64,000 nucleotides of DNA from Andalucia godoyi And28 (lineage: Eukaryota; Protista; Jakobida). Positions 11,115-63,740 of the stretch are shown in pieces. The notes beneath the pieces are model-generated. The model saw nothing but the letters and a program-made list of their open reading frames with translations. It searched no databases and was not told where the DNA came from. The DNA is taken from assembly GCA_009859145.1 (NCBI GenBank), contig VRVR01000003.1, positions 7,066-71,065 of the forward strand. Reading direction: 5' to 3'. Each line of letters opens with the position of its first letter. Position 1 is the stretch's first letter. The translations under genes and the position numbers were made by a program.

Positions 11115-11512
11115 GTTTGCATACAACACGCAATAGAGCCGAGTGAACAATCAGCAAACATACATATTTATTGGATTTGGGAGGGGAAAAAAAAAAAAAT
11201 TTAATGGCTCTCGATTGGGGAATGCAGACCTCGATGGGAAGGGCTGGTTCCCGAGTCCCCCAACTGTCTACTGTATCACCCGCCAAGTCATCGGCTAAGC
11301 TGTCACCGAAGACAGATCCAAAGCCGCGTGTTCTTTCATTTTTTGCTATCTATTTGGAGCAAGCACCAGCCGTTTCTGGGTTCATTCTCCTTTTGGGTTC
11401 CAGCGCATCGACAGCTGCAGGTGTCCAGAAAAGCTCCAGGAACTGCTGCGCCGTGTTTTTTCCCGATTGGAGCCGACGACCGCGCACACACGGACCACTG
11501 CTACAACCAATC

Positions 11513-24500: not shown

Positions 24501-27500
24501 TTTCTGCGTAACTATGCGCAATTCTGCTTCGGACTCCACCTCGAAGTTACGGGACGGCATCATGAACATGGCGGATCCAGACATTGGCGCCCCTGTAGCG
24601 GTGCGCGGGATATCACGACCAAATCGGGTGGGGATAGTTTCCTGAATGGCAGATACGCATTCCGCGAATTCCGGAGTCGTTATACGGGGGGCAGAAAGAG
24701 ACACCCTGCAGCAAGTGCCAGATCCTTTCACGATGATGGGCACGGGGTCAAGATGCGCGACACGCAGCAAAATCGTCTCTTCGAGACCAAGCGGCAGCCC
24801 TGCAGTAAACCTGCAATTCACTCGTGTCTTCTCGCCAGGACTGATTCGACCTGACAGGGCAGACAAGTCAATCACACCGACTCGCGAGCAAAGAGACAGA
24901 TCAAACGAATACGGGAACGCAACCTTTCCCGTGTTGAATATCATGATGTCCTTTTCTTCCGTGCGATTAAAAACAACTTCTCCGAAATCAAGCGTATTCT
25001 TTTCCAATCTGAACGATATAACGGAGGCCTCTCCTGACAAGGGGAAGTCATAAACTGGACCGTCATCGACAGAGCACAGTGCTGTGGCAGACACCCCAGC
25101 AGCATCCGTTCCGGAGAAAACGAAATCGACAGATTCGGACATTCCAGGTTTGAGATACCCTCGAATCGGCAAAATGTCCAGTGCGCCGGAGGGCAGCGGT
25201 GGCGAGCCATCAGGTACTTCAATCGTCCATGAAAATCTGGCATCGATATTTCCGCTGTTGGTGATTAGCACCGGAATCTTTCGGTCCGTGTCCTGCAATA
25301 CACAACCAAACCGAATCTCACGCTTATCAAACTGCAAATTCGGAAATGTCAAGCTTGCAAACAGGCTGATAAACTCCTTCGATGGATGTCCTTGAAACGT
25401 GACTACAAGACGAGACTCGATATCGTGTGAAGCCAAGTCTCTTCTGTACAACGGATCGCACCGTATTTCCACAGAAAACGACTCCCCAACCCCAACATCA
25501 AAGGACGACGGGGAAACCGAAAAGGGGACAGGAGCTTCGATGAAGCAACGGACGGGCAAGACAGTCACATTCTTCGCAGTCACAACAGCCGATAGCACAG
25601 ACTCTCGGTGTTCGCATTTGTGGAAATATGAAAACTGTGCAGATGGAGAAGAAAATTGCAGCACCGGGACCACAAAATTTGAAACAACCCGAACTTCCGA
25701 CACTGGCCTCCATCTTCGATCTGCTTCAACCTTGATTGGAATGATCTCCTCCACAGCCCCGCTCTTCTTGGATAATCCTACGACGCCAACATTCACGAAC
25801 TGACCTGGAGGAACGGTCAAGAACTCTGGTTCCATTCGGAACAACCGGGCTGAAGAATCGCTCTTGGTCTTCTCCGGTGCAAAGGAAACATTTTGCGCCT
25901 TTCTTCCTCGGTTTTCAAGGACGAATGTGTGGCACAAGGACTTATTCGTGAACTGAGGACCGAAATTGATTTTGTTTTCTGGTAAATTCGTGACAAGGCA
26001 CGAACCGTGGCCAACAGCCGCAAGCCGAACGTGCAACGAATCAGAAAATTCAAAATCAATCACTAACTCATCGCGAAATGCCATCGATTCATCGGGAACA
26101 ACGAACGCGTGCAGAATGAACGTCCCATGCGCGGGTACGACACCCCTGGTAACATCCACGCGAAACGGTGATCCACTGTTCTTGACAGCGCAAGAAAATT
26201 GCGCATCGACGGGACTGCGATTAACCAGAGACACGGGTTTTGAGTGTTCCTGTAAAACGGCAACCTTTCCAAAGTCTATAGAAGATGATGACGACTCGAT
26301 AATAGGACCTCGGACATTCATACGAATCATAACACTCTTGGCGGATTCTTCCGCTCCGGGAACACTAAAATAAATTGGTACTTGAACATCGCCAAGAATA
26401 CGAGGTATAAACTGGATATTCGCATCGTAACAACCATGCGCTGGCACAATCCCGCTTAACTGCGGGACAACAAGATTCAACAGGGGTTTTTCAGGGTCCA
26501 TTCGCGGTACACTCATCTCATACTTGGCTGAAAGATGGCTTTCATTCATAATGCTTACAACGTACGAGTATGTGTGATTGATAAAGCATTCTGGAACGTG
26601 AATAACGTCACGAGACAACGAAATGGGAGGCACGACACATTTTGCTAGAATGGGAAGAACATGAACCTCCTTACCTACACCATCGATATCCATCACAAGG
26701 GATATGTCGTACGATTTCTTCTGACACGGGATGAAGTCCAATTGCACATCCCCGCAGGTATGCGGCTCCAACGTTAACGATGGAGGTAGGATATCAAATT
26801 CACGCTTGATTTGCAGCAGATCAGAAGGAATACGGAACGACACCTTCATCGACACATCCGACGTATTTGACAATGTAATCCGTTTGGAGACAAGGAAAGA
26901 CAGGGAAACCTCTCCAAAATCAATGGAATTGCAATCAAAATCGAAACTTGGACCGACGCAGACACCGTCTACATGAATTACCAAAGGGTCGGCCCGACCT
27001 TCGATCTTCCAATCAAAGGATTCTGAAAACTCACCAAGAACATCCGAATTGAAAGTGACTCCAATGGTCTGTGACTCGCCACCAGCAACAACACCAGAGT
27101 CCGGACAAAATCGGAACTTCGAGCCGTACAAGCTTCGGTTGGGAACCAATTGGAAACGAGCGTCTATGTTGCCCGGATTCTCAAGAATAAAATCGAATTT
27201 GTAAGGCTTCGAAATAAATAACTCTCCGACATCTAATGAATCATATGTAAAGTTCGCTTTCGGTCCGACTCCGAGACCGGATAGCTGTAGAGGAATTCGA
27301 CCGGGCCGCCCGCCGACACAAAGAAACGCAAATCGCGTGTATGATGCAGCAGACTTTGGATGGAACTGGACTTCAACGTCAAATGACGTACCCGGCCACA
27401 GTTCTCCGTGATCTGGGACGATGGAAAACAGATCGTCGTCGAACAAATCCCTCACGAACGGGTTTGCGGCTCCGACAGCCGGAAACTCCGCCAAAGAATT

Positions 27501-28394
27501 TTGCTCGATGGACAATATATCGCTTCGAAGGGCATGTTGCTCCTCTTCAGCCGCCGTCGAAAATTTCTTCCATGCAAACGGAACCCGGTACGTGGAAGGG
27601 TTGGTAATTCTCACGGTCTTCCGAGACTGCAAACCCACAAACGTCGGATCGACGTTGACAGCCTGCGTACTCACTGTGATGGGAAGCGAAACAGCATTGC
27701 CAGTGAGATCGACAGTCGTTTCCGATCCATCGTCGCAACGCACATTCATTGCTTGGTTATGTTGTGCGACCACAGTCGGGTGAAACTTCACGTCCAACTG
27801 AAAGCCGCCATCTGGCTCGATGTACCCTTCGGAGGGAAAGACGCTGAAGGAGCCCTTGCAGTCAATCGAAAAGTGAGCCGGTCCGTCGCCAAGATTGCGA
27901 ACAAATATGGGGCGAGAAGAGTCCAGCAACACAGGAGCACTGTCGAAAGTAATGGATTTGGGAAAGTCCAGCCGTGAACGAGGTCCTGCTGCTTCGATGG
28001 ATACAGTGAACTTTTCTCTTTCTGTGACGCATTCAATCATAGTTTTGAAAATTCTTCGCTGAGGAAAAGTCAATTGCAGTGTATACGTGATTTCCATTCC
28101 CGCAGCAATTTTCTGTGAAGCCTTCGAAGGATCTTTGGGGACAATCTTGAGCCACGAAACAGTAGAGGGAAGAACTCGCAGTTTTCGAGCAATCTTGTCC
28201 TTGTTTCTGAATTTCAAAGGGACCTCATAGGTTTCCAAAGGGTCATACTGATCAACAAGAATGGAACTAGGAATCGGGGCGAATAGTGGCTCATCCACCG
28301 GCACAACCGTCGAAGCACCTTCACGCGAAAGGAAGACGTCGACAACACGGGGCCGATCCCGACCTTGCGAAAACGAAAAGCTTGATGTCTGCAT
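15582..28394 (-). CDS. HYDIN: Hydin, axonemal central-pair protein (ASH/Ig-like repeats plus adenylate-kinase-like domain)
   Basis: 4270-aa uninterrupted ORF. The N-terminal YEVPLKFRNKDKIARK and many ASH repeats (DFG.V...N.S/G) are typical of Hydin, as are the P-loop GPRLSGKT and the C-terminal PPWVFYVRG. Confidence 0.95.
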   Translation of the reverse strand: MQTSSFSFSQGRDRPRVVDVFLSREGASTVVPVDEPLFAPIPSSILVDQYDPLETYEVPLKFRNKDKIARKLRVLPSTVSWLKIVPKDPSKASQKIAAGMEITYTLQLTFPQRRIFKTMIECVTEREKFTVSIEAAGPRSRLDFPKSITFDSAPVLLDSSRPIFVRNLGDGPAHFSIDCKGSFSVFPSEGYIEPDGGFQLDVKFHPTVVAQHNQAMNVRCDDGSETTVDLTGNAVSLPITVSTQAVNVDPTFVGLQSRKTVRITNPSTYRVPFAWKKFSTAAEEEQHALRSDILSIEQNSLAEFPAVGAANPFVRDLFDDDLFSIVPDHGELWPGTSFDVEVQFHPKSAASYTRFAFLCVGGRPGRIPLQLSGLGVGPKANFTYDSLDVGELFISKPYKFDFILENPGNIDARFQLVPNRSLYGSKFRFCPDSGVVAGGESQTIGVTFNSDVLGEFSESFDWKIEGRADPLVIHVDGVCVGPSFDFDCNSIDFGEVSLSFLVSKRITLSNTSDVSMKVSFRIPSDLLQIKREFDILPPSLTLEPHTCGDVQLDFIPCQKKSYDISLVMDIDGVGKEVHVLPILAKCVVPPISLSRDVIHVPECFINHTYSYVVSIMNESHLSAKYEMSVPRMDPEKPLLNLVVPQLSGIVPAHGCYDANIQFIPRILGDVQVPIYFSVPGAEESAKSVMIRMNVRGPIIESSSSSIDFGKVAVLQEHSKPVSLVNRSPVDAQFSCAVKNSGSPFRVDVTRGVVPAHGTFILHAFVVPDESMAFRDELVIDFEFSDSLHVRLAAVGHGSCLVTNLPENKINFGPQFTNKSLCHTFVLENRGRKAQNVSFAPEKTKSDSSARLFRMEPEFLTVPPGQFVNVGVVGLSKKSGAVEEIIPIKVEADRRWRPVSEVRVVSNFVVPVLQFSSPSAQFSYFHKCEHRESVLSAVVTAKNVTVLPVRCFIEAPVPFSVSPSSFDVGVGESFSVEIRCDPLYRRDLASHDIESRLVVTFQGHPSKEFISLFASLTFPNLQFDKREIRFGCVLQDTDRKIPVLITNSGNIDARFSWTIEVPDGSPPLPSGALDILPIRGYLKPGMSESVDFVFSGTDAAGVSATALCSVDDGPVYDFPLSGEASVISFRLEKNTLDFGEVVFNRTEEKDIMIFNTGKVAFPYSFDLSLCSRVGVIDLSALSGRISPGEKTRVNCRFTAGLPLGLEETILLRVAHLDPVPIIVKGSGTCCRVSLSAPRITTPEFAECVSAIQETIPTRFGRDIPRTATGAPMSGSAMFMMPSRNFEVESEAELRIVTQKLSALLHEFEAKCVQKYGVHSAQEMTENAQILHEISLAQIGIISAVNMARYTVDFGHVFRGGSASVGFRLWNSGNSAVSLSYDRKLFANSGFLLEPEKVAKLPPNEYQDFTVSLNSKVLLTGMNKLSIPFRIRSGLSVMIDLAVNVVEPRMEFSTDKIDFGSVLGGRCKTVVVRFSNSQPLPLHWSLKRIEPPFGSVFDVVPVKGEVAPLGHVDIEFRFMPTEERAYVVKVPVSVYGNDPSANATTSIICRGSGCPPRVHLSTELLPFGSVLPYASSVRSFTMSNPLDVPLEVFSRNFDDQHLVEDDALRAMLFAEPSAYQLLPERAPGQSLDENLVRQFTNQSSDPLTKSDGSSAPDFTVYAIHGPRLSGKTVLSSRIASCTSLPVATMDEILDAALATPSDFQEELKSLLSSADRESTSQFSPELLSSCLSSFISANSFSSGMIIDGIFTKYQISCVSLIQGIVGFSVKENAKLNVLSIDGVNVRKGVLRVLEQNLARAEAQLKSQTVQFVSDDAYDVMSTDQKTAYDLAVSTMKNLKMQIKRLRSEKEAFEVRLHSEADEVWSEPPPRPASPVVDPAAAKKAAKGKKEESVVAPPPPPPKVVHPAEKYGADFVTFSQFDEQYREFCQYLESPESQQVLASHVHVNGAAPLDDALSETMSALKLSDEMSKDASDPVPSPTMSMVCRPEHLRTQSPQASCFSIQNQSGIHYEASNVFSPLLDGKRSRRWIIDAKNSVTIEVAFSPKTPSAFSCVLSFMIVGWNAEFGVSCSGSCDYPRINDEPRNMFYKVVKPKSLEDPKALQAYNLVDNTFDFGPLLTNRKLDGLTSADASLFQSRLRVSNKQSSAQICKVAMLSQQTSSFQVSWNSAELQAEETKELVVSAQPKQIGRCEDVLFLTIENNPEPTSVRFCCTGSSPEVDLSCSELDFGRLLKGTPDRKEFVISNRSLLPSKWKLVVNDVVSSCVSFSPMQGSIPPSGAASVSVSFLGKEPRLISGKVEIYVYDQYADVASSKEVSKKEILVKAETYDVDVECEIPKEGIFDFGVVKVGQEYEQKMSLSNKNTKYEVEFKFSFSKRSLQNVVRIEPLTGILKAGGKEKVPIRVIFKADNEQTFTNMRDIHCEYSDPGTKEHVGKFTLAVSSRAVFSKFTISPPFGLNFGPILFDSSKVRKLDIRNDGHFSFDFAVSENPTFDFSAQVPAVSNVKDSKKASAPAGGQSLSIGPFSVAPALGSLAPGATEAISVTFASREPGAFSRQVYLHVRDRDPNAFPQGLPYMLEAESCIPGINTTDLVSIFEEQQVVHGAESLNELKSVFVSQLRVFSFGTFLVGEDASERFKIANPQKVPVDVNIEIIPSSDVSKDTFFCDSTYLTIPSHESRYVAVSFKPSKLGAFSATFKAVPKGNGSASDLKFEMRGDATLPHISIEKPEPKSGTGYVLDFGRVVASKTMKQSIRVRNHGSVVAHVQALLSGSGYELAGGSSFQLSPSESRSLDVVFASSTEGSFEGALKLQVSKNTFEDNVIKLKAVCYLQNLVIENLPDDRSDAVSLGECPVGCPKKIDFLVRNLSADVVRFEACVLKAEGVKMTPSIGHLLGRSSKSVVLTWSPNASVSLAALQASLKVSFKRIRIVVNPHGSQEDGEDDEDVNDWDDRKVSVSWDRDSSGKTVKFVQPIPEPKFENIDTSSQDVLLPMEGTADVVSCDVDLSDIVFRSTFLFSSRMHKLRIRNTSKIPFSGTTSVTFSDPDTDLSTFSVSPAQFSVDPDQSLELAVSYKPQDMLPHTADVSISIVGLDRASEGCRSVHLVGVPECPIVHFETQFSTDYISTKRLPGLPGPDGVVGPLNPETRVLEIESRGVKVRNVRRFYVLNPTNLSYDFVLVPGVANARAPGVRCLTQYGTIHSGKKFELVFEFIPDSLSVSEAFWSFEIKSHSIAIPLMVVGRAAEPDVLFEKGHVLFRPLLVGRRATEIVQLVNREHLPFAFSFENLDSTSDSNQIVRVSPLSGTVPAEGQTPVELTFAPDVEQSYNINLRCVVKKKPTPLNLNVKGDAYMVKDSLYVIDVDGTTVEVFGGVSNVNSIDFGRIYVGQSVEKRLRIVNSGRYPFDYNFSSSSSKHLSFSPTMGTVPKGETSLVTVAFAPTAEVRLDRFKSVCKVTNGRTYLFELSGWAARPQLRFSFYYFDFGPSFIYHPGATPSSTNLVVYNDDSTDVSFDVLFENSAHLEVKASPTVLKPGQSQVIQISFYPREAKKYRDVVPIEVNGLAASTINLTIEGEGTVPRLELVNAAHQSVSFGSVRVGDSSSRSVGITNKSKIAASIAIDEQALRELGITVQPSQFVCRPSQSVYLNVVFAPQLRVRPFKNLAVPLTMNGQTLPLFSMSGTAQGFEVKLDPSIVSFGPVVERSSSIQKIMIENSGDIGVAFKVARLSPGTDFSLSPVDGFVAPHADGTVEVVFCPSSLSGTHPEERSAKFAVYVEGLSEPLPISCSGTCVVKPPASETIRFSTAVRTPVSKKVTIKNPSKTEWNLRPIIDNDAWKVNVPVVNVAAGQQMQIDVVYHPLSMTSAGALHKGSMFIPCPDGSALLFSFEGEANAPVAEASAAQAVTVPSKSQYVHSLTVKNWLRAPQRFRVVMDLNKHAATSVKCLDYIDVPAGLSRDFKLTIYAFVESTTSGKITFINDETREYCFFNISIQHSPPKPISEIRLETHVRQPSAYALRVDNPLAEDVPLTLSCSSASVFVEGPLVAKSMQETALSLIFMPLLAGNEKDVTLMLKSDKLGAFPYTMHLTAHPAPLEKSYHFEVPLGSTLSQTVRFASFSKNAIDFNVDLQPSDFEAAKTVKAAASPSGKDGIEVSLPVSFTPRSLGPSKAVLRVSHPQGGEYVFTLSGACIAPRPQGPFDVKSGQSVNIPFTNVFKDNAVFNLTIDNPAFIVKPTETVPAGKAAAFAVQYKPSGTATAPVVGKLVVSNDKCPPWVFYVRGLPA

Positions 28395-28935: not shown

Positions 28936-31900
28936 ATGATAGATTTGAGTTGTATTGAAGGATCGCAGATCCAGCAAATTTTGGATGAAACTTCGGAAGA
29001 CAACATTGCTGAAGTGGAGCATGCTCTGCGAAAGGTATGCAGTTTTATTTTGTGTTCTCGTTATTTGTTGCTTGTTTTCGCCCCCCTCCTCCCATCTTCC
29101 TTTCAATTCTTCTTTTGTGTTGCACAGGACTTGTGACAAATAGTGTGCCAGTGCTGACGAAACACTTGTTTTTTACCGACAGATATCTTTTGACGATCCC
29201 AAATCGAGACAACGAATCCTGAAGTCGCTTCTCGTCAGCTTGAGCCACGGGCCGCAGAAAAATGTAGGTGCAAGAACCAGATTGTTCCATCATCTTCTTG
29301 TGCCATTGCTTGATCTTCCGTCTAGCGCTTCGATCATTTGCGATTTGATTGAGATCGTGTCTTCTCCAACCTACGAGTACTTTGCAAATCTTCTCTTGAA
29401 AATCAACCTGATTCCGATTCATAGACTTTTGTTTGGCATTTCTCTATCCAACCATCCAATCAAAGAAAAGGCTGTTATTGGCGTGCAGATAGTGCGGGAT
29501 GCTGCGTCCGCTTGCGCGGACAAGGACATTCAGAGTCTTCCAATGCCATTTCAGCATACCCTGATGCAGATCCGCTCGTCCTTCGGGCTTGCAGTAGACG
29601 CTCTTCCTGGTGATTCGTCGCCTCTCATCGCACAGTTGTTCACGGACAAAACGATGGACGTCGCTACCCAGTTCTTTAACCAATCCTCCGTTTTGCCCGG
29701 TCTTTTGCGAGATCTTGGTCCTGAGTGTCTGTCCTCTAAAGAATCTGCCATTCGGGTGTTCAGTTCGCTGTCGGAAGTGACATCCGCGGAGCTGGCGGAA
29801 ACTGTGGTATTCATGGCGAACTCCAGCGCCGCTTCCCCTTCTACTTCTTGGAATATTGACAATTTCATCGAGGCTTTGCGGGATGTGCACCCTGCTGTTG
29901 ACTGGCACCAAGTGATCCAGAAACTCGATTATCCTGGTTTTGTGTTGTTCGACGCTAAAGCATTCGCGGTTTTGTTCACAATTCTTCGAAAATCCATTCG
30001 GGAATCTCCCTTCCCATCGAAGTATTTTTTGAGAAAGTGGACGAATGTCGATGGACAGTTGTCGCTTCTCAAGCATGCTGTCCAGATGCCACCGGAGCTG
30101 CTGTCCTTTGCTTCTTGCTCGGATAAGAAAGCGACGATTGACATTGTTGGCTATCAGTCAAAGAATTTGAAGAACGGGACATGGAATTCGCTCGATCTTA
30201 TCCGACTTCTTTTAGAAGTAGCCGGAGAAAATCGTCTTCCGGTAGTGCGCGAGATTTTAGATATCGCAAATCGGCAGTTTCCAGAAATACTTGTTCTTGC
30301 CCTTTTCGAGTCGCGGACGCCTCAGTTGCGGTTGACACAAGAGTATTCCTCAGCGATACTGCGCAAAGAGATGACGAAACTCGGCCAAAATGCCCCTCTG
30401 CTTACTCACTTGTGGAACGTGGATGCTACATTGTTCGCCCATGTTTTGATCGATTTGTACTACAAAGATCCTCAGATTCTGTTCCGAGTTTTGGACTTGG
30501 CACATGAATTGAAAATTCTGGGTTCCCTTTTACCCGGTAGAGACTTTCGGTTTGTTCTGGACCTTGCAGTGCTGAGTGCACGACGGGAATTCTTGAACTT
30601 GCGTGTATTCCTCTCGAAACGCTTGGCAGCAGACAAGGATGCGTTTGCAGAAGCCATTGTATCCTACCTTTCGGACAAATTGCTGCCTGTCACGGAGCAT
30701 GAGCAATCGCCATTGCCGAAAACCAATGTTGAACTTCCTGCGGAGGTCATTCTTATTTTCCTGAACTGTCTTGACGAATCCTCTCGTCTGCTTTCTGAGC
30801 CGCTTCAGGTCAGTGTGGTGAAGCTCAAGCAATCATTGTTTGTGCACTTCCCACTTTTGCGGGCATCGAAAGACAGTTTGGCGTCGTCAGGAATTTCCGG
30901 AAATTCTGAGCCTGTTGCGCATGCCGCGACTGCCACTTCGACTGCCACGTCTCCGGAGATAGAAGAGAGGGCGGATGCTCTCTTCCGGAAGGTGTACAGT
31001 TCCGAAATTTCTGTGGATGACTTTGCATCCAAGTTGTCTCAGCTTCAGAAGAGTGCGTCTGCGTTGGATGTGCAGCTTGCGAATTGCATCGTCCATAATC
31101 TACTGGAGGAATACCGGTTTTTTGAAGATTACCCAAAGAACTATTTGAACATCACCGCACAGCTCTATGGAACTATCATTTTGCGCGGACTCATTGCGGA
31201 TTCGCCACTATCTACTGCGTTGAATTACGTTGTGCAGTCTCTTCGGAAGAATGGAGACTCCAAGCTGTTCAACTTTGGAACAGTGGCATTGTCGTGTTTT
31301 CTGCAACGGATTCCCGAATTTCGTGAATTCAGGGACCAGTTGCTGCTAATGCCAGCTCTGATCAATTCCGATCCTCGCTTGAAGGCTGCACTGTCGGCGA
31401 CCCATGTTGAAAACTCGGAGTCTGTCGATCGAATTCGGATGGCGGAAAAGCCTACGAAACATGACGGAAGTGCAGATGAGGAAAGCGTCTCAGAGGACGT
31501 GCAGAACAAGATCCACTTCATTCTCAACAACATTTCCCAGACCAACTTCCCGACAAAAGTTGCCGAGCTCCAGCAGGTCGTGTCGAACTCCATTTTGTAT
31601 TTTGGGCGGTATTTGGTGAACAAGCGTGCTGCTGCAGAGCCGAATTTCCATTCCTTGTACATCTCCATTTTGGAGTCGATGAAGAAGAAGGAATTGTGGG
31701 ACATTGTTTTGGCGGCCACTCTTGAAAGAATCAAGTTTTTCTTGGAATCAAAGAAGGCAACTACCGCGGATCGATCGACCTTGAAGAACTTGGGTTCTTG
31801 GCTGGGCGCGATCACGCTGTCAAAAAACAGACCGATTCTTCGAAAGCAGCTGGACCTCAAGGAACTTATTTGCGATGCCTTTGACAAAGGAAAACTGATT

Positions 31901-34900
31901 TCTGTTGTGCCGTTCGTTGCAAAGGTTCTTGAAGGATGCGCTGGTAGCCGCGTGTTCAAACCACACAACCCGTTCACAATGGGCTTGTTGAGCATTCTTG
32001 CTGAAATCTACCGTCTACCGGATCTGAAGTTGACGCTTCGTTTTGAAGTGGAAGTGTTGTGCAAGCATCTCGATGTGAATTTGGCCGCAATACCCGTCAA
32101 GAGCATTTTGAGAGACAGAATTCCGGTGGATCGTGTGTCATCGCCTGATTTTTCCAGCCAGCCTTTGCCTGGCAACGTTCCTGTGGTCGAGGACTCCATG
32201 AAGAAGTTCCGAATGTCTCCTTCTATTGGTCCTGTTCCGGCACCGTACTCATCGCCACAACGGTTGCCTGCTCCTTCTGGAAACCAGCCTCTGAGTGCTG
32301 CTGCATCAGCGGCCGCAGCAGCACCATTGCATCAGCCGGCAGTCAATGAACTCAGCGAGGCAGTGTTGCATAATGTTGTCGTGGATGTCCAGATTTTCCA
32401 TTTTTTGCAGGATCCACAGCTGAAATCAAAGGTTGCGAGTGCCTTGCATAAGGCGATAACAGACGTGATTGGCCCGATTGTGGATCGATCTGCTACTATT
32501 TCCTGCATCACAACTCGTGATTTGGTGCGCAAGGATTTTGCCTTTGACGGTGACGAGGACCGTTTCCGTGCCTGTGCTCAGCTGATGGTCCAGCGATTGA
32601 CGAGCAGTCTTACGTATGTTACATGCCGAGATCCTCTTCGAAACACGTTTTTGGGGTCCCTTCGGTCGCTGTTGACATCCGTCCCGCAGAGTCCGGAATC
32701 GGAGCATGTCGTGCAACAGTTGGTGGCGGACAACTTAGAACTTGGTTGCCGCATTATCGAGCGAGCGGCACTTGAACGATGTCTATCAGACTTGGACAAA
32801 TTCTTGGAGGACTCGTACCGCATGCGACGCGAAGCGCATGCCAATGGAGTCGCTTTTGTGGATTCCGGTCTTGTCGAGTCTATGAATGCTGTCCTGAGAA
32901 ATGCGCCTGCCTTCCCGCATATGTTGAAACCAGGGCCAGGGACGCCGCATGTGATGCAACTTGCTGTTTATGAAGAGTTCCTTAAGTCGCCTCTCCGAGC
33001 TGAAGAGAGTATGGGTATGACAGCGCCTGCTGGACCTCCTGAGGGAAATGTTGGAGATGATGGTGTTCGTGTTACGCTAAAACGACTGCACTCTATTCTG
33101 GAGGAAGTAGAAAAGGTGGTAGCATCCGAAATGCAGAGGTCGGTTGAACCGCTTCGCACGCTGGTGTCGTTTCCCAGAGATCATCCAATCATTGTGTTGT
33201 TGAAAGTGATTCCCAATATTTTATCCGAAGGGAGTGCTGGACAGGCGGACGCTGCGCTGCTGTTTGCGAAGGAGGTGATGTCAAAAATTCTCGAGGAGCA
33301 GAATTTGTTCACGATGGAACTGCAGTTCAACATTCTTGAAGCCATTCGAGTGGTGCTTCCTGACCTCCCCAACGCGCTGACAGAATGGGTTTGCTCGACG
33401 CAGGTGCATCGCATCTTCCGTCGAAGTATCACGTTCACTCTTCTTCGATCGGGTATTCTGAACGTGAAGCGGATGGATGTGTTGCTTGCGCATTCCATAC
33501 TTTCGTCCACGGAAAAGGATCCTTCATCCTTGGAATTCGCTGTCAATCTTGTTCGAAACTTTGTTATAGAAGACAAGAGTATTCGCGCAGAAGATGTGAT
33601 GAATGTTCTCGACGCGTTGAGCTCATATGCGGCAAGCCAGCGAGCCCCCTCTGGAACATCCGACAAGCTGGTTGGTCTTGTGAATATGGCGCGCAGCCTT
33701 GTTTCATCCGACACCCCTTCTGCTTCGGATGCGGCAGATTCTGCACAGGCCGGCCTCTCGGGTCGTCGCTTGCTAAAGCCCCGAGAGCATGATCCTTTCC
33801 TCGTTAAGCTCTTTGAGGAGTGGCTTGTCTTGTACTCGACATCGCTGTCTGACCAGGCCGTTATTGCATTTCTGGCGAAAGTCGAGAAACTGGGGCTGCT
33901 GCGGTCTCCCGCTAGCTTTGGGCAGTTGTTCCGTACGTGTGCAGAACTTGCTGTTGATGCCTCCTGCAACCGCTGCTGGACCGTTGCCCAAGCTGACGGA
34001 ACGCCGGACAACGCCTGTTTTCTTCCGATTGATGCGTTTTCCGGTTTGCTGTTTTTGATTGGAAAATGGTTCATTAAACCGGAGATGCCCTCTGCAAAGA
34101 CTCCTCTTGTGAAGACTGTTGTCGACGTCTTTGCACATGTATTGGTGGAGGATGCCGGATTCGCGGGATCTCAATTTGACCAGCGCCCGTATGTGCGATT
34201 CTTTTTGAATGTCATCAACGAAGTCTGCACCGAACCGTCTTTGGAGGGCATCCAAATCCCCTTGTTGCTGACTGTCGCAGAATCTCTTGAATTGATTTCG
34301 CCGCTCCGAGTACCGTGCTTTGCATTTTCATGGTTGCAACTGTTCGCTCACAAAGATCTGATGTCTCGTCTGTTGCGTCGAACACCGAACAGCTCCTTGC
34401 AAGGTATTTTGGTGATGAAGACGTTGATGATGTCTCTGCTACGGTTCATGTATCCCATTTTGTCTTCTTCTCAATTCACGGTTCCTTTCCGCACGTTTTA
34501 TCGTGGTGTGTTGCGTGTGTTCCTTGTCATTGTTCATGATTTTCCAGAGTTTTTGTGCGACTTCCATAATGCATTTTGTGATGTCATTCCAGCCACATGT
34601 GTTCAGTTGCAAAACCTTGTGTTGTCTGCCTTCCCGTCTGCGATGCGCTTGCCAGATCCGTTTACACCAAATTTGAAAGTGGATCTACTCCCCGAGATCC
34701 AGCAGTCTCCTCGAGTGCTTCTCGATCCGAGCGAGTTGCTGCGGGCACGCGCTCATGTTTTCTTTGACCGTCTCCAAGAGTATTTGCAATTGAGACATCG
34801 ACCATCTTTCTTGCACGAATGTATGGACGTTGTCTCCGAATCGGGTGCCGATGATTCATTTTTGCACGCTCTTGTGTTATTTTCTGGTATGACAACCATC

Positions 34901-35326
34901 GAGCAGCTTCAACGGAAGACTCCCTCGGTGTCTATTGTTGACAGTGCTGCAATGGATATTTTCCGCCATCTCATTTTGAACAGTGCACCACGCGGCCGAT
35001 ACCGGATTCTGAATGCCATGGCGAACCAGCTTCGCTTCCCGAACAATCATACGCATTACTTTTCCTGTGTCATCCTCTTCCTGTTTGCAGAAATCACAGT
35101 TGATGGAGAGCATCTACAGGAACAAATCACTCGGGTTCTGTTTGAGAGGCTCATTGTCAATCGCCCCCATCCTTGGGGTCTGTTGATTACATTCATTGAG
35201 CTCGTCAAGAACCCGAGATACGCATTTTGGCAACGATCTTTTATCCACTGTGCGCCCGAAATCAATCGATTGTTTGATAACGTCGCAAGGTCCTGCGAAA
35301 GTGCATCCATTTCTTCTTCTGCCTGA
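28936..35326 (+). CDS. CNOT1: CCR4-NOT scaffold NOT1; two exons 28936-29034 and 29183-35326 (2080 aa)
   Basis: Splicing gives MIDLSCIEGSQIQQIL...ISFDDPKSRQRILKSLL, matching the NOT1 N-terminus. Other segments: TTP-binding YRFFEDYP, MIF4G NKIHFILNNIS, CAF40-binding IVDRSATISCITT...KDF, and C-terminal RPHPWGLLITFIEL. Confidence 0.95.
29035..29182 (+). other. Spliceosomal intron in CNOT1 (148 nt, phase 0)
   Basis: Donor AG|GTATGC, branch-like CTGAC at 29154-29158, acceptor CAG at 29180-29182. Removal restores the frame. The alternative acceptor at 29127 gives an immediate stop. Confidence 0.85.
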
Positions 35327-35986: not shown

Positions 35987-36260
35987 CTCGTCTGCTTTCC
36001 TTACTGAGCGATGGATGCGTGATGTGAACTGCAGTTATCGTCACGAATGTATCCTCGCGAATAACAATTAAAAAGTTATTATCATCATCATATTTTGACT
36101 CTGAAAAAGTCACAAAATCTGAAGGAAGCGGACAGCTTTTATTTGTGTGGAATTAAAGAACAGTTGTGTGCGATGTGTCTCCCCGCGACTACGGCAGGCT
36201 ATGCTAACATCATCCACCGACAGCCTTTTGTTCTCTCTGTTATTCATTCTGATGGTTTGT

Positions 36261-36549
36261 GTTTTATGTTATCGAATCCCCAAGCAGCACCTTTCATAGG
36301 AGGGGGAAAAAAACATCCCATGGCTCCAGAGAGGGATCTTCCCGACAAACTCAAACCGGCCATGCCCCGAAGAGGCCGAGAACCAAGAAACTCGTGGTTA
36401 TGACGACCGTTTTTTGATGCAGAGCAATCTGCATGGACGAGTTGGTGCTCACCCCCACATAAATAAAAACAAAAAAACAAGTGGCTTGGATCTTTCTTTG
36501 GTAGAAGCTTCGCCGATGATCAATACCGATTCGCGTTTTGGCAAGCGGA
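36261..36549 (+). repeat. Dispersed diverged repeat, copy A (homologous to 63072-63520); possible relic of a gene or mobile element
   Basis: Collinear shared blocks: CAAGCAGCACCTTTCAT, AAAACATCCCAT, GAGAGGGATCTTCC, CTCAAACCGGCCATG, CCAAGAAAC, TTTTGATGYAGAGC, and a 39-nt block CTTGGATCT...GCCGATGATCAA (36485-36523 vs 63474-63512). Confidence 0.85.
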
Positions 36550-57594: not shown

Positions 57595-59472
57595 TTAAGT
57601 GGATCGCTGCTGCGTCTGCACGCCAGTCTTCAAAGGCGCCTTAGCGCGATCCCGAGTGGAATCGATGGACTGTTTGACGGTTTCCTTCGACGGCATCATT
57701 GATGCAGTGGCATCGACTGCCTGCTTCGCGACGTTTGCAGTCTTGTCAATCATCGATGCGGTTCCCTCGGCGGCCTTGGCTTTGGTATCTTGCACCTTTT
57801 GCACAACAGCGTCCTTTGCTTGGGCGGTTGCCTGGGCGGCTGCTGCCGTGGAGTATGCAATCTTGTCCTTTGCTGCTTGAACAACGTTTGACGCAGCCTC
57901 GCCCATCGTCGGGTGGGCACTTTGCAGCGTTGAATCAGTCTGCATCGATGTTGCGATATTGGCTCGGGGCTGCGAGGACGGCTGGATCAGAGGCGCCGAT
58001 TCCAAGAAGACGGTTTCAACCGGAACGGTTTCCACAAAAATGGCCGCCGGAACAGGCTGCAACAGCGGAGCGCTGGACGTCGAGAACGGATTCGGCTCCT
58101 GCACAAAGTTGCTTGACGTGGACGCACCGGGGCCGAATGTGCCGTGGTCGATTGTGGCTGCCTGCTGCTGCACCGGTGGAAGAGTAAGGGGCTTCGCCGC
58201 CGGTGCAGGAGGTGCGTTGGATGCGTACGAAAACTGCTCAGCGTTGTCCATGCGGAAGTTCGACTCGGTGTCCTTCATCATGGGGAACGGCTTGGAGGCA
58301 CCCAGCAGAATGGGTGCTCCCTCGAGAACCGGCGTCTGCGTGGAAGACGGTCTCTGTGTCTTGGTGGTAGACTGGGCGGTGGCAGACTCAAACGAACCAC
58401 CCGCGCTGGCAGACAGTCCAAGGGTGCCAACGGCGGGTGCGGATGCGGCTTCTGTGGTGGTGGCGCTTGCCTGACCCTCCTGGAGATGAGCTGCGTACGC
58501 CTTTGTCTTCTCCGCGGCTGCATGAACGACCTTTCCCACGGTTTCGACAATATGCTCTGCGGATTGCATGAGAGTCTCCTTCACTGTAGGCATCGCCTCC
58601 CGAGCCTTTTCCGCAACGTAGGTACCCGTCTGAACGGTCGTCTCTGCCAGCTTGTTGCCTACCTGTTTTGCCGTTTCCGTCATGCTAGCAGCAGCTTGGG
58701 CAGTCTTGGCTCCCGCAACATTCGCCGCGCCTTGCAGCTTGCTCATCGTGGTTCCTTCAACCGCGTAGGGCTTGACAGACCCCTTTCCCTCCCCTTCAAA
58801 TACCTCTGCTTCCAGAGGCTGGTCCTGCCAATGCTGTGTTGCACCACCCAGGTACATGAAAGCCGGTTGGTGCGATCGCGGTGCAGTCGCATCCAGAGGT
58901 CGTTCTCCCGGGAGAATCGGCGCGTTCTTGATCTCTTCGAAATCCTCTCCAGTGCGAGCCTGTTTGGTTTCTGAAGGGCTCTCTTTGGCAGAGGGCTGCA
59001 GGGCAGCAGGCACCAGGGAAGGTGCAGCAGAGAAGAATGACTTCGACGACTCTTCCTTCTTTGGTGCGATTTCTTGGACTTTCTCTGCTGCAGGTTGTTC
59101 TTGAATGCGCTTGACGGGCTCTTCTTGAATGCGCTTGGCAGGCTGCTGCACAGGCGCGGCGGCTGCTCGCTGCGCAAGGATCGGTTTTTCAGTCGAAGGC
59201 GGAGCCGCTGCCGGCGCTTTCTTCTCGGGGATGGCAACACCAGAAGCGACAATTCCTGTCCCAATCGTGCTGGTCGATTCCTGCATAGGCTGCAACGGAG
59301 TTGCGCCAGTGTACGGTCCAGTCTGAATTCCGATCTTGAAGTCCTGCATCACAGGATTGCTGATCGGAGCTTGTTGTCCGGAGAATCCAACGATGTTCAT
59401 TCCTTGCTTCTCAGACTGAGCAGTAGGAACGTTGGTATCGACGGGCTTGATGTTTTCTTTAGACGATTGCAT
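57595..59472 (-). CDS. Hydrophilic low-complexity protein with 11-mer amphipathic repeats (group 3 LEA/perilipin-like)
   Basis: ATG 59472 (MQSSKENIK) with a TATAAA box ~160 nt upstream. A/T/Q/E/K/P-rich. Six 11-mers at 58483-58680 and a second block near the C-terminus. Confidence 0.7.
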   Translation of the reverse strand: MQSSKENIKPVDTNVPTAQSEKQGMNIVGFSGQQAPISNPVMQDFKIGIQTGPYTGATPLQPMQESTSTIGTGIVASGVAIPEKKAPAAAPPSTEKPILAQRAAAAPVQQPAKRIQEEPVKRIQEQPAAEKVQEIAPKKEESSKSFFSAAPSLVPAALQPSAKESPSETKQARTGEDFEEIKNAPILPGERPLDATAPRSHQPAFMYLGGATQHWQDQPLEAEVFEGEGKGSVKPYAVEGTTMSKLQGAANVAGAKTAQAAASMTETAKQVGNKLAETTVQTGTYVAEKAREAMPTVKETLMQSAEHIVETVGKVVHAAAEKTKAYAAHLQEGQASATTTEAASAPAVGTLGLSASAGGSFESATAQSTTKTQRPSSTQTPVLEGAPILLGASKPFPMMKDTESNFRMDNAEQFSYASNAPPAPAAKPLTLPPVQQQAATIDHGTFGPGASTSSNFVQEPNPFSTSSAPLLQPVPAAIFVETVPVETVFLESAPLIQPSSQPRANIATSMQTDSTLQSAHPTMGEAASNVVQAAKDKIAYSTAAAAQATAQAKDAVVQKVQDTKAKAAEGTASMIDKTANVAKQAVDATASMMPSKETVKQSIDSTRDRAKAPLKTGVQTQQRST

Positions 59473-60232
59473 TGTTTGTTTTGCTTTGGTGTACGTTGGT
59501 AAACGAAAATAAAACAGAGATAACTTAAAAGATGAGAAAATAGAAATGCGATAAGGAAACGAAAGCTTGAGCAAAGAAGGAAAACCGGAAAGAAAGAAAA
59601 GGACATGTTGTATTCCCAGCGACATCACATGTTTATAACCATGCTGCACCAGTGCAATTGTTTCAAAGTGTTGTGCTGCGGTGTGTTGAACTGTCAAGTG
59701 ATGTTTCGAGTTACTCCCTGCCAGGCATGCGTATGGCTCGCTTGAACCTTGGGGCGTTTCAAGAACATTCCTGAAACGATTCCGTGTTTGGTAATAAACC
59801 CTCCAACCCCAAACGACTGGTGGGACGGCTATGATGAAATCATCGGATAATATGGCTGAGTTGGCAGCCGTCGACATTGCTGTTGAGTGAAGGCCGACCT
59901 TTTTCTTCTGCAGATTGCTGCTACAGGTTGCTGCTGTCGTCGTTGTTATTCTTGTCGCGGCGGCGTAGGAGTGCAGACCGAGGCCCAATGAGAGACACTG
60001 TCGAATATTGACAACCCGATTCCTTGTAATTGATGATGGGCACTGATGCTGATTGCAAAGGTCCCCTTTCCGCCAAATAATCTGTTTTTGAGGCGCAGCA
60101 TGCGAGACAAATGCTTTGGAGAGGCTTTGGGTTGGAGGGTGATACTCGAAAGCCGTCTTTTGTTTTTCTTCTGCCACCCGGACAACGTCCATCTGTTTTT
60201 ATTTTTTATATTTTTTAAAATTAATATTACTA

Positions 60233-62830
60233 TTATTCTGAGTCCGCTTGGTCGTCATCGTCTGTATCGTCTCTTCGGTTGCGCTTGCGGGTGTCGGACC
60301 GCGGGTCCTTGAGGTCCACCAGTCGTACTGTATAGGGATTGCCGTTAAGCGTCATCTGAATTTCCTCGGCGTTGTCCCAGGACTGATCCAGCGCGCCGTC
60401 AACCACTGCGTCGAATGCGGCAGGATCTTTCAATTTCCAAAATGTGCTGTTTCGAGGGATCAGTGCACCGCGGCAGCCGCAGCTCATGTAAGATGCAATG
60501 AGATGAGAACACGGCAACCCACGGCTGACCGGGGCGCCGCATGTGCAGGAAAGATCATGGTCTCGCGTGTCCACAGTCCAATTCAAATCGCCAGCAACGT
60601 CCAATTCCTCTCTGCGCTGTGGAATCCGTGTCGTCCGGGACATGATGGCATCCGACTGAAGCCGTGGACGAACAGAAAATGTACAGATTCGACACATTGG
60701 AGACAAGTCGTCAATAGCTGTGCAGTCTGCAACGAGAAACGACGCATCCATCTCTTCTCTGCTTGTTTCGTACAACGCAAACGGCGACAACCCTGCATCA
60801 CGAATCGAAGAAACGACAAATGAAAATTCCTGATGCGGCCAAGAGCACGACGACAGTCGAGAGGCCACGCCAAACGCTGGGTGGATTTGCGATACTGATT
60901 CGTTATTTGAAAACCCGACAGCCACGTCTTCACAACGCAGGATGCTTTTGAACAGGGATGGCACCTGCGTCAGTCGTTGCAGCTCGTTCTCAATGGCCAA
61001 AGACAGTCGATTGACGCGCAATGCAGAGTCTAGCCCAGCAGTAAACTGATCGGCAAAAAAACAAGAAACCCAGAAACTGCGGACTTCAAAGAGGGTTCGC
61101 AGTGTTTCAGACAGTTCTGCAACCGCGGATGCCGACACAAACTCTCGCGTCTGCACTTTTGCACTCCAGTCACTCCAGAGTGTTTCAAACTGCAGGACAG
61201 ACTCTGAGCATCGGCAAATGGCATCGAGCTCATCCATCATCAACACTGCATCCCGTTCGGAAGACAGTGCAGCTTTTGCACGGTCAAACACGAACCGCTT
61301 CAAAACAGAGGAGCTGAGCATGAACTGTGAATTCGGCCAGTAGGTCGCAGCAGCTGCCTGCACCACGCCATGGATCCGCAAAGCACTGCTGGCCACCGAA
61401 ACATCTGGATCTGCGATCACGAGAGACGGGATGCCCGGCATCAGCGCGGTGAAGACATCGAACAACCACACAAAGGCGTCGACAGAGAGGTCTGCCAACA
61501 GTGCGTATGCCACCGGCACAGTTTGGTGATCTGAATTGATAGTTGTCAGCACCACAAGTTTCATTCCAAATAGCGGCTGCGACATCGAAGAATCGATCAT
61601 CAGCACCTGCTTCCCAAATTCTGAGAACCGAAGGCGCCCGTTCGGCGTCGCCCACATGAGCCGAACAACAGCATTGTCCGGACCCGTAAAGAATGTAAAT
61701 ACAAAATTGGCATTCTTTTTCTGTTCTGCAATGCACAATCGGAGAATCTGCGCAGCTCGACTTCCCTGGTGCCTTTGTTCGGCGAGTCGGTTTTGAATGT
61801 CTTTCGACAAGACGATGTGTTGTCCTTGTTCCTGCAATGTGGCGACAATTTGCCGGAGCGGCGCGCCTTGGTCATGCATTTCCTTTGCCAGCTGGATCTG
61901 CTCCGGCGACAATTTCCGATGTTGTGGAAACAGCGCCGCCTGCTCAGGAGTCGGACTATGTCCCGTATGTTCCAGAAAGCAAGTGCGGATTTCAAATGGC
62001 GTAGTAGCGGTCGTTGGAAAAACAAGAGCCATTGAAAGCTTCTCCATTGCAGTTCCAGCCGATGATAGCCCGGAAGCAGGGCCTACTGCAGCTCCGTGAT
62101 TTCCAGATGCGGAAGTCGGATGCACCGTGGAGCTTCCAGAATTGGCCGCCGCCGTTGTCGCAGACGACGACGACGACGATGAAGAAGGTAGTGGTGGTGG
62201 TGGTGAAGAAGAGGATGATGACAACAAAGATGCGGCAGGTAAGGATGATGAATTTGCAACCGGAACTATCGAGGATGATGCAGGTAGGGATAATGTTGTC
62301 GTTGACGAGGAGGATGGAGATAGAGAAGAACTAGAAGAACTTGGCACAACTGATGATGATGATGATGATGCTGGTGGTGGAGGGGGTGAAGAAGAAGATG
62401 ATGACAGAGGAGCAGAGGACGAAGACGAAGATAAAGATGAAGATGAAGAAGACGGTGGCGCAGTTGGGTTGGAAGGTGCGTCGATACCTGGGCCGTACGG
62501 AATCCCGTTTGCATCTCGAAAGACCGGGACGCAGTAAACATACCACTTGCAGCCACACCGAATAGACGATCTGCGCCGTTTCCTTTCGACACCATCGATT
62601 TCTTTCGGATGACCTCTTGCAGAGCACACGAGCCGCAGCGACTGAACTCCAGCCCCATCCGACGTTTTCCAGTCGAAACCCGGCTGGCGATTCACAACGG
62701 AGCAGTTTTCGCAGCGGAGTCCAAACCCCGTTCGACGCGCCGTGGAAATCAGCTCTTGGACAAGTGCTTGGTACGACGGAAACACCTTTGGAAACTCGGA
62801 ATTAGACACTGGTTGTTGATTCGCCATCAT
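60233..62830 (-). CDS. Mutator (MULE) transposase-derived protein: FAR1/WRKY-GCM1 DNA-binding domain, degenerate DDE core, SWIM zinc finger
   Basis: LVCSARG...SIRCGCKW...LEHTGH; VLMIDSS (D1); VIADPD (D2); CxxH and catalytic E not recognisable; SWIM SCTCGAPVSRGLPCSHL. Intact ORF; no flanking TIRs seen. Confidence 0.85.
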   Translation of the reverse strand: MMANQQPVSNSEFPKVFPSYQALVQELISTARRTGFGLRCENCSVVNRQPGFDWKTSDGAGVQSLRLVCSARGHPKEIDGVERKRRRSSIRCGCKWYVYCVPVFRDANGIPYGPGIDAPSNPTAPPSSSSSSLSSSSSSAPLSSSSSSPPPPPASSSSSSVVPSSSSSSLSPSSSSTTTLSLPASSSIVPVANSSSLPAASLLSSSSSSPPPPLPSSSSSSSSATTAAANSGSSTVHPTSASGNHGAAVGPASGLSSAGTAMEKLSMALVFPTTATTPFEIRTCFLEHTGHSPTPEQAALFPQHRKLSPEQIQLAKEMHDQGAPLRQIVATLQEQGQHIVLSKDIQNRLAEQRHQGSRAAQILRLCIAEQKKNANFVFTFFTGPDNAVVRLMWATPNGRLRFSEFGKQVLMIDSSMSQPLFGMKLVVLTTINSDHQTVPVAYALLADLSVDAFVWLFDVFTALMPGIPSLVIADPDVSVASSALRIHGVVQAAAATYWPNSQFMLSSSVLKRFVFDRAKAALSSERDAVLMMDELDAICRCSESVLQFETLWSDWSAKVQTREFVSASAVAELSETLRTLFEVRSFWVSCFFADQFTAGLDSALRVNRLSLAIENELQRLTQVPSLFKSILRCEDVAVGFSNNESVSQIHPAFGVASRLSSCSWPHQEFSFVVSSIRDAGLSPFALYETSREEMDASFLVADCTAIDDLSPMCRICTFSVRPRLQSDAIMSRTTRIPQRREELDVAGDLNWTVDTRDHDLSCTCGAPVSRGLPCSHLIASYMSCGCRGALIPRNSTFWKLKDPAAFDAVVDGALDQSWDNAEEIQMTLNGNPYTVRLVDLKDPRSDTRKRNRRDDTDDDDQADSE

Positions 62831-63071
62831 TCTTGAGCCCACACACACCACTCTCGCACTCGCATGCAATCTGCAGAACGAGAAACCAAACGGTTGATTG
62901 TTTTGTGTATCAACATTGAATATCAAACAAACAATATCATAACGGAAGTTTTGTTTCTCTAGCCCTATTGGGACGCGATTTTCCCACCGTAGTCAAGTCT
63001 AGGATTCTTGTTTTTCCTTCACTTTCCTATTTCTTTCCTATTTCTTTCTATTCTTCTTTCTGTTTGTTGGT

Positions 63072-63520
63072 GTTTTATAATCGAACCCTCAAGCAGCACC
63101 TTTCATCAAGGACAAAACATCCCATAGCCCCAAAGAGAGGGATCTTCCAAACCAACCTCAAACCGGCCATGTCTGAAGATACCGAGACCAAGAAACCTGT
63201 GGATTCCCTCTCGTTGCACCTTGCTGAGCAAGCGGATGATCAGCAGATCACGAAGATGTGATTGATTGCGTTCAGAATGCGATTTCAAGTCAGAGATCAA
63301 GAAGGAGCAAAGGCAATGGCGTCGTCAGGTGCGATGTGCACCACCGCCGACTACATTCTCTTTTCCTCCAATGTTCATTTTTTTGAATGTTCAATCGACT
63401 GGGGAATGTGTTGGTTGCGATGATCCTTTTGATGTAGAGCTGGTGTTCGCCCTCAATTTTAAAAACGTGTGTCCTTGGATCTGTCTTCGGTGACAGCTTA
63501 GCCGATGATCAAGGCGAGCG
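63072..63520 (+). repeat. Dispersed diverged repeat, copy B (homologous to 36261-36549, with ~200 nt of extra internal sequence)
   Basis: Same collinear blocks and same orientation as copy A. Confidence 0.85.
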
Positions 63521-63628: not shown

Positions 63629-63740
63629 GGCATCAAGGCATCAAGGCATCAAGGCATCAAGGCATCAAGGCATCAAGGCATCAAGGCATCAAGGCATCAA
63701 GGCATCAAGGCATCAAGGCATCAAGGCATCAAGGCATCAA
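63629..63740. repeat. Perfect octamer tandem repeat (GGCATCAA)x14
   Basis: 112 bp, no mismatches, read directly. Confidence 0.97.

Follow-up and report, generated by a model that had tools for sequence, protein, structure and literature searches.

MULE (Mutator-like element) superfamily transposases have been exapted as regulators of their hosts, a route for which there is good documentation in plants, fungi and animals and scarcely any in deep-branching protists. In plants, its products are FHY3, FAR1 and the FAR1-RELATED SEQUENCE (FRS) proteins, in which a FAR1-type C2H2 zinc finger is joined to a MULE core and a SWIM zinc finger; the catalytic activity of the FHY3/FAR1 family has been lost and its DNA binding kept (PMC13306707). 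Here, we describe a gene of the same make-up, ANDGO_05343, from the jakobid Andalucia godoyi And28. It lies in a stretch of 64,000 nucleotides of contig VRVR01000003.1 (GenBank assembly GCA_009859145.1, positions 7,066 to 71,065 of the forward strand), which is referred to below as the window and to which all coordinates apply. An earlier reading of the DNA (the original prediction) took the gene for a domesticated Mutator transposase; every test run here went as that reading had predicted, and none of the observations that it had named as contrary to it was encountered. We consider that this apparently single-copy host gene probably encodes an exapted, catalytically dead FAR1-type MULE transposase that acts as a DNA-binding regulator. 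What is new is the lineage; the type of event is already known, and no new category is opened by it.

The plant proteins are the closest described systems, and FRS-like proteins are the best database matches of the Andalucia protein, which has both the four ligands of the FAR1 finger and the CxC...CxH ligands of the SWIM finger. It differs from the plant FRS proteins in being at most 32% identical to them, in belonging to a jakobid (Discoba) and in carrying a serine-rich loop of approximately 150 amino acids (aa) inside the finger. A precedent in a protist is provided by the ciliate Oxytricha trifallax, whose macronuclear MULE genes (including Contig14154.0.g51, with FAR1, MULE and SWIM domains) lack terminal inverted repeats (TIRs) and have been interpreted as domesticated (PMC3558436). 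The likeness is one of described features, and there is a difference: Oxytricha has nine MULE-domain proteins, some with a DDE triad, that have been proposed to cut DNA during genome rearrangement, whereas the Andalucia gene appears to be single-copy and to have a dead site.

The animal proteins ZSWIM1 and ZSWIM3 have the SWIM finger in common with the Andalucia protein, which also gives a weak match to the Pfam ZSWIM1-3_RNaseH-like model (14 bits, far short of the threshold); nothing indicates that they are specifically related. The yeast transcription factors Aft1/Rcs1, Aft2 and Rbf1, which derive from MULE transposases, are not known to retain more than the finger, whereas the Andalucia protein also retains the core and the SWIM finger. 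The finger of the yeast factors is of the same 'insert-containing' WRKY-GCM1 type, with a basic insert between cysteine ligands, and this family takes in the Far1-like proteins, Rcs1/Aft2 and related transposases (PMC1702500). Of the label 'FAR1/ZSWIM/Aft-like' that was originally proposed, 'Aft-like' and 'ZSWIM-like' are loose; the set of three domains as a whole is the one seen in FHY3/FAR1/FRS. Finally, the active transposases ISCth4 TnpA (IS256 family, PDB 6xg8) and Muta1 of Aedes aegypti share with the Andalucia protein an RNase H-like core with a helical insertion domain; the Andalucia protein differs in its lack of the catalytic glutamate and of the CxxH motif, and no TIRs, target-site duplications (TSDs) or further copies were found for it.

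The active site

The residues that matter for catalysis can be identified by reference to ISCth4, for which D241, C262/H265 and E348 are named as DDE and CxxH residues in the paper describing the structure (PMC7780238). The Andalucia protein was aligned by MAFFT with 100 homologues no shorter than 450 aa, which are mostly FRS-like proteins and possibly include active elements, and the columns of the alignment were tied to the solved structure. In the profile–structure alignment, these columns fall on residues D244, C265/H268 and E351 of the 6xg8 chain, an offset of three residues. Both catalytic aspartates are kept (Table 1). Within the stretch that corresponds to the H-x-x-C-x-W-H motif of the family, F503 stands in place of histidine (found in 90 of 95 homologues), S506 in place of cysteine (82 of 93), S508 in place of tryptophan (77 of 93) and V509 in place of the second histidine (88 of 94). 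An asparagine, N607, occupies the position of the catalytic glutamate, in a column that is anchored by F596, A598, G599 and R605. The local alignments (WPNSQFMLSSSVLKR against WPHTEHKSCWFHLRR, and FTAGLDSALRVNRLS against FTAGLQSTSRVESCN) have such clear anchors that there is no room for a shift of register.

When the two aspartates are read together with the H, C, H and E positions, the pattern DDHCHE is found in 52 of the 100 relatives, whereas DDFSVN is confined to the Andalucia protein, which alone among the 101 sequences retains none of the residues H, C, H and E and whose active-site motif is the most erased of the set. Thus, the loss of the catalytic glutamate and of the CxxH motif, both claimed originally from the letters of the sequence, is borne out by a structure-anchored alignment. 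As judged by that alignment, the protein possesses neither the complete DDE triad nor the C/DxxH motif of an active MULE, and the ability to cut DNA has most likely been lost with the dismantling of the site. In Muta1, the replacement E419A abolishes transposition, and mutation of the histidine of CxxH removes 99.5% of it (PMC5225508). It might still be supposed that the gene encodes an active transposase of an unusual MULE, with a non-canonical active site and no TIRs, given that D413, D474, D476 and the conserved W587 are kept and that non-TIR MULEs are known (PMC6446971). This is highly improbable: glutamate has given way to asparagine, the cysteine and histidine of CxxH are gone, as is the histidine at 503, the equivalent mutations abolish the transposition of Muta1, and neither further copies nor close relatives of the gene were found in the data searched.

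Architecture and fold

The protein is composed, in order, of a FAR1/WRKY-GCM1 zinc finger, a helix-turn-helix (HTH), a MULE RNase H-like core and a SWIM finger. Colinear Pfam matches bear out the order that was originally proposed (DNA-binding domain, RNase H-like core, SWIM finger), and the short motifs quoted at the time are all in place: MIDSS at aa 411, IADPD at aa 472, MLSSSVL at aa 504, SALRVNRLS at aa 602 and RKRNRR at aa 848. An AlphaFold2 model has a mean predicted local distance difference test score (pLDDT) of 69.8 and a predicted template modelling score (pTM) of 0.65, and most of the core is at approximately 90. When this model was compared with known structures by Foldseek, the five best PDB matches were chains of ISCth4 (probability 1.00, TM(target) 0.41–0.45), followed by retroviral integrase cores and RuvC. 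A profile made from the family alignment likewise matches ISCth4, as the 'Mutator family transposase' 6xg8 (E=3.6e-4), and it also matches the DNA-binding domain of AFT2 (4lmg, E=0.013) and WRKY domains. The alignment of the linker region of the profile with the HTH of ISCth4 is weak and not significant.

In the finger, ligands C69 and C94 are separated by 24 residues and flank a basic insert (KRRRSS). Strands 38–45, 62–69 and 97–102 are modelled at a pLDDT of 83–95 and, together with strand 279–285, form a four-stranded sheet.

Uneven conservation and the question of decay

All eight zinc ligands are kept, namely C69, C94, H288 and H291 of the FAR1 finger, which lie in columns at least 90% conserved across the family, and C762, C764, C774 and H776 of the SWIM finger. 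More generally, when conserved columns are defined as those that are at least 80% conserved among the homologues, the protein keeps 9/9 in the DNA-binding domain and 7/8 in the SWIM finger and C-terminus, as opposed to 15/33 in the core (fingers 16/17 versus core 15/33; Fisher p = 0.0007). The core residues that survive are mostly aromatic, proline or alanine (W393, W455, P468, P499, F548, W552, W587 and F596 among them), and those that have been lost are mostly polar residues of the family (D358, D383, D408, T415, Y416, N419, H434, E448, T473, H503, C506, H509 and E607). The core retention of 15/33 is the lowest when set against 98 homologues (median 0.93, minimum 0.58), although the consensus comes from a match set that is approximately 90% plant FRS-like, and part of the low value must therefore reflect phylogenetic distance. 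It should be noted that non-plant outliers score 0.58–0.67 on the core and yet retain the catalytic residues.

This pattern bears on the possibility that the gene is a functionless, solitary MULE in decay, the frame of which is open by chance or because inactivation was recent. The catalytic residues are indeed gone, and neither an orthologue nor evidence of selection has been obtained. However, a frame of 2.6 kb stays open neutrally only at very low divergence: in simulations restricted to substitutions, 9% of runs kept it open when amino-acid divergence was 5%, 1.3% did so at 10% and none at 40% or more, such that a relic with half of its conserved core gone should be full of stops. Decay would also have had to replace 18 of the 33 conserved core positions while sparing all but one in the fingers. 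To this can be added that there are no TIR remnants, that the codon usage matches that of the host, and that a gene model was still produced by an annotation pipeline in which repeats were identified ahead of gene calling (PMC7050145). A decaying relic is therefore quite improbable. What is found at the locus, an intact open reading frame (ORF) without features of mobility and with evidence against neutral decay, is what is looked for in a domesticated transposase.

Relatives and placement

Membership of the Mutator/MULE transposase superfamily is firmly established by homology. When 1.84 billion representative proteins were scanned with HMMER (filter only), 537 matched at E<=1e-3, of which 22 reached E<=1e-10; the best match other than the protein itself was an FRS5-like protein of Rosa (32% identity). 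Amongst the top 149 matches, 137 fall in one cluster, the members of which proved to be plant FRS-like proteins where they were looked up; the rest are mostly metagenomic or Logan sequences, along with one glomeromycete protein. In a 61-member alignment (A1), Pfam recognizes MULE in 61/61 sequences, ZSWIM1-3_RNaseH-like in 59/61, FAR1 in 54/61 and SWIM in 30/61, and the pairwise alignments to relatives span aa 15–99, 275–640 and 750–785 of the Andalucia protein. The whole protein and its aa 262–865 were each used as queries in word-index searches of proteins, and both returned only the gene's own entry; the poly-serine tract probably saturated the former query.

No orthologue was found among the 1.84 billion representatives, the metagenome contigs or, using both the 728-aa and the 865-aa products, an exact-match contig index. 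The closest full-length relative, P0004, is encoded on a Logan contig (L001, SRR12487036, 1–4116) and keeps both aspartates, CxxH and the glutamate. On this compact contig, an ORF that resembles a serine recombinase or resolvase lies upstream of it at a distance of 157 nt, and P0004 may belong to a composite mobile element. P0004 was considered as an orthologue and rejected, the contig and the window having no neighbours in common; with its catalytic residues kept and a resolvase-like ORF adjoining, it is more likely to belong to a mobile element.

In a neighbour-joining tree of 270 core columns (a rough tree, with no bootstrap), the Andalucia protein has a long branch (0.43, as against a median of 0.24) and stands beside the non-plant P0004, outside the 137-member plant cluster, a position for which long-branch attraction could be responsible. 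The placement is consistent with an origin independent of the plant FRS genes, although it is not proof of one.

Transposon ends and copy number

Active MULEs typically end in TIRs, which are usually long, and are bordered by TSDs of 8–10 bp. The original prediction noted that neither TIRs nor TSDs were visible, and comparisons of inverted repeats and of flanks agree with this. Between 59000 and 64000, there is no inverted repeat beyond chance and none above 34 nt at 71% identity. A 13-nt inverted match (GCAATCTGCAGAA, at 62866–62878 and 59906–59918) exceeds what was seen in 60 shuffles and was considered as a candidate TIR; it is taken to be a chance match because it does not extend, contains the palindrome CTGCAG and has no flanking duplication. 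No TSD adjoins this 13-mer, which is the best match in a sensitive comparison of the two flanks. The absence of TIRs would not be decisive on its own, given the existence of the non-TIR MULEs referred to above. No second copy was found in the 64-kb window (by tblastn), in the protein collections or in the metagenome contigs, the last of which yielded no relative at all.

The gene is also packed among host genes, as was originally noted. Its neighbours encode an RRM protein, a dynein light intermediate chain, biotin carboxylase, Naf1, a family-1 glycosidase (GH1) and EDC4, and a divergent gene begins approximately 340 nt upstream of the ORF. Its G+C content at third codon positions (0.52–0.56) and its correlation in relative synonymous codon usage (0.67–0.69) are inside the range of 13 neighbouring ORFs.

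The gene model

The features of the locus are collected in Table 1. The claim of an intact ORF of 865 aa is true of the DNA, but the product in the public annotation has 728 aa. (A listing of the ORF at 897 aa is an artefact of a bacterial start-codon table that admits a TTG start.) The sole close database entry is EukProt ANDGO_05343.mRNA.1 of A. godoyi, 'Putative protein FAR1-RELATED SEQUENCE 10', which is 100% identical to the ORF apart from the absence of aa 96–232. Thus, the gene can be called undescribed, as it originally was, only in the sense that no indexed paper discusses it or joins Andalucia with FAR1; the public annotation had already given it a FAR1-related name.

Table 1. Features of the ANDGO_05343 locus, in window coordinates.
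Feature	Position	Strand	Basis or remark
Whole coding region, ANDGO_05343 locus	60233..62830	minus	865 codons and stop, uninterrupted; N-terminus MMANQQ
FAR1/WRKY-GCM1 zinc finger, strands 1–3 (aa 15–116)	62483..62788	minus	Pfam FAR1 (weak), AlphaFold2, profile matches to AFT2/WRKY structures
Annotated in-frame intron of the public model	62133..62543	minus	411 nt, GTATGT...AG, stop-free; covers aa 96–232
Ser/Pro/Thr-rich disordered insertion (aa 117–268), strand 3–4 loop	62027..62482	minus	AlphaFold2 pLDDT <50 over aa 117–268
Finger strand 4, ligands H288 and H291 (FEIRTCFLEHTGH)	61946..62026	minus	Family alignment, AlphaFold2
Helical linker with helix-turn-helix (aa 296–372)	61715..61945	minus	Weak Pfam HTH_7 and HTH_38; AlphaFold2 helices 309–372
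MULE RNase H-like core with alpha-helical insertion domain (aa 373–642)	60905..61714	minus	Pfam MULE and ZSWIM1-3_RNaseH-like; phmmer; Foldseek
D413, first catalytic Asp, kept	61592..61594	minus	Family D 92/100
D474, second catalytic Asp, kept	61409..61411	minus	ISCth4 D241; family D 92/99
FMLSSSV (aa 503–509) replacing family H-x-x-C-x-W-H	61304..61324	minus	Alignment; motif corresponds to ISCth4 C262/H265
N607 at the catalytic Glu position	61010..61012	minus	ISCth4 E348; family E 77/85
SWIM zinc finger (aa 749–785), CxC...CxH intact	60476..60586	minus	Pfam, alignment; C762, C764, C774, H776
C-terminal basic patch RKRNRR (resembling a nuclear localization signal), then acidic tail DDTDDDDQADSE	60236..60289	minus	Sequence; putative function

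The difference between the two products is the annotated intron, which spans most of the poly-serine tract and strand 3 of the finger. There is evidence that it is probably not spliced as annotated, and we favour the unspliced reading of 865 aa. Splicing would delete WYVYCV, the strand 97–102 of the four-stranded sheet, which is modelled in the unspliced protein at a pLDDT of approximately 95. The sequence 'DCRWFI' of P0004 aligns to 'GCKWYV' of the Andalucia protein and is followed by a short loop. The spliced product models the finger less confidently (a mean pLDDT over residues 91–100 of 76, as against 95) and gives a shorter strand 4. Finally, the codon pattern of aa 97–232 suggests selection on the protein: serine accounts for 59 of the 136 codons and draws on both the TCN and the AGT families, and codon position 3 is the most variable (entropy 1.91, as against 1.24 at position 2). 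Counting against the unspliced reading is the fact that the splice signals are canonical. The open frame across the tract proves little by itself because low complexity leaves the other frames nearly open, and the Pfam FAR1 scores of the loop-deleted and the spliced N-terminus (17.1 and 17.8 bits) are uninformative. The serine-rich stretch sits in the loop between strands 3 and 4 whether or not the intron is real.

The A. godoyi genome is of 20 Mb and gene-dense, with introns in approximately 12% of 864 characterized genes, and these average 151 bp in a range of 55–756 bp (PMC7050145). The intron of the public ANDGO_05343 model looks like an annotation error, and errors of this type could also affect other low-complexity genes of the genome.

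Proposed function and points against it

A regulatory function is inferred by analogy with FHY3/FAR1, and features of the protein itself point the same way: its finger is intact, and it has an HTH, basic patches and an acidic tail. In such a scheme, the protein would enter the nucleus by means of its basic patches, and its FAR1 finger would bind specific DNA, possibly aided by the HTH. The dead core and the SWIM finger would serve as a scaffold for dimerization or for the binding of partners; transcription would be regulated, possibly with the acidic tail at the C-terminus serving for activation, and the protein would neither cut nor move DNA. To a more specific proposal we give an even chance: that a FAR1-type MULE transposase was domesticated among the jakobids separately from the events in plants (FHY3/FAR1), fungi (Aft/Rbf1), animals (ZSWIM) and ciliates, to give a lineage-specific, sequence-specific regulator in which the catalytic pocket is the most thoroughly erased among the relatives sampled. 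In a bolder variant, the protein would bind and control the subtelomeric transposon- or virus-like repeats from which it arose.

A domesticated protein need not act in transcription. It might be a repressor or targeting factor for subtelomeric MULE or virus-like repeats, or an accessory of recombination or chromatin, and the structural evidence would be identical. A. godoyi does have transposon- and virus-like subtelomeric sequence, on scaffolds that were excluded from the main assembly (PMC7050145), and for the tamed MULE genes of Oxytricha it is genome rearrangement, not transcription, that has been proposed. Nevertheless, a role of this kind is on present evidence unlikely, because nothing points to any specific alternative, no related MULE copies that might be regulated were found in the window or the protein scan, and the architecture and the acidic tail are those of the FHY3/FAR1 type, which are transcription factors.

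Several points weigh against the proposal that ANDGO_05343 encodes an exapted regulator. The protein's own Pfam matches all score below the gathering thresholds (FAR1 at 57–97, HTH_7 at 305–329, MULE at 410–479 and SWIM at 759–784), with MULE at 23.3 bits, as against a cut-off of 27.6, and SWIM at 13.7 bits. The contrast between core and fingers is measured against the plant-dominated consensus described above. If the annotated intron is real, the gene product may be the one of 728 aa. For a gene to count as domesticated in the strict sense, orthologues that evolve under purifying selection are required, and there are none in the collections searched. Finally, the searches for copies covered the window, the protein collections and the metagenome contigs, and diverged MULE copies could sit on the subtelomeric scaffolds omitted from the main A. 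godoyi assembly.

The interest of the gene lies in its host. Transcription factors of deep-branching protists are poorly known, and the jakobids are central to debates on early eukaryote evolution; the A. godoyi genome is tiny and has few transposons outside the subtelomeres. If the exaptation of ANDGO_05343 is as we propose, it would be one more independent instance of this route, and it would offer a specific candidate for a regulator in a lineage where hardly any DNA-binding proteins have been characterized. It would also be a natural example of fingers and fold being kept while the active site becomes dispensable once the mobility of a MULE is lost.

Other features of the window

A search with Rfam gave no match in the window. 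Two stretches of approximately 170 nt, at 63042–63202 and 36231–36397 (plus strand), are approximately 80% identical, begin with a pyrimidine-rich segment and reach an ATG in the context CAAACCGGCCATG. Indels directly after the ATG break the frame, such that the conservation looks non-coding, and the two could have a promoter or 5' leader in common or else be copies of a small repeat; Rfam gives no match to the pair, and no signal of folding was seen (z = 0.30). At 63629–63740, there is a tandem repeat, (GGCATCAA)x14, that is perfect throughout; 26 nt of it recur at 11296–11321 on the opposite strand.

The ORF downstream of ANDGO_05343, at 57595–60192 (minus strand), also has 865 aa, by coincidence. 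Its first approximately 240 codons look non-coding, and the true start is likely to be the methionine of MQSSKENIK near 59466; the product is rich in alanine, serine, threonine and glutamine and has no Pfam match. Elsewhere, two uninterrupted ORFs of 4270 aa (15582–28394, minus strand) and 2028 aa (29240–35326, plus strand) fit a compact, intron-poor genome.

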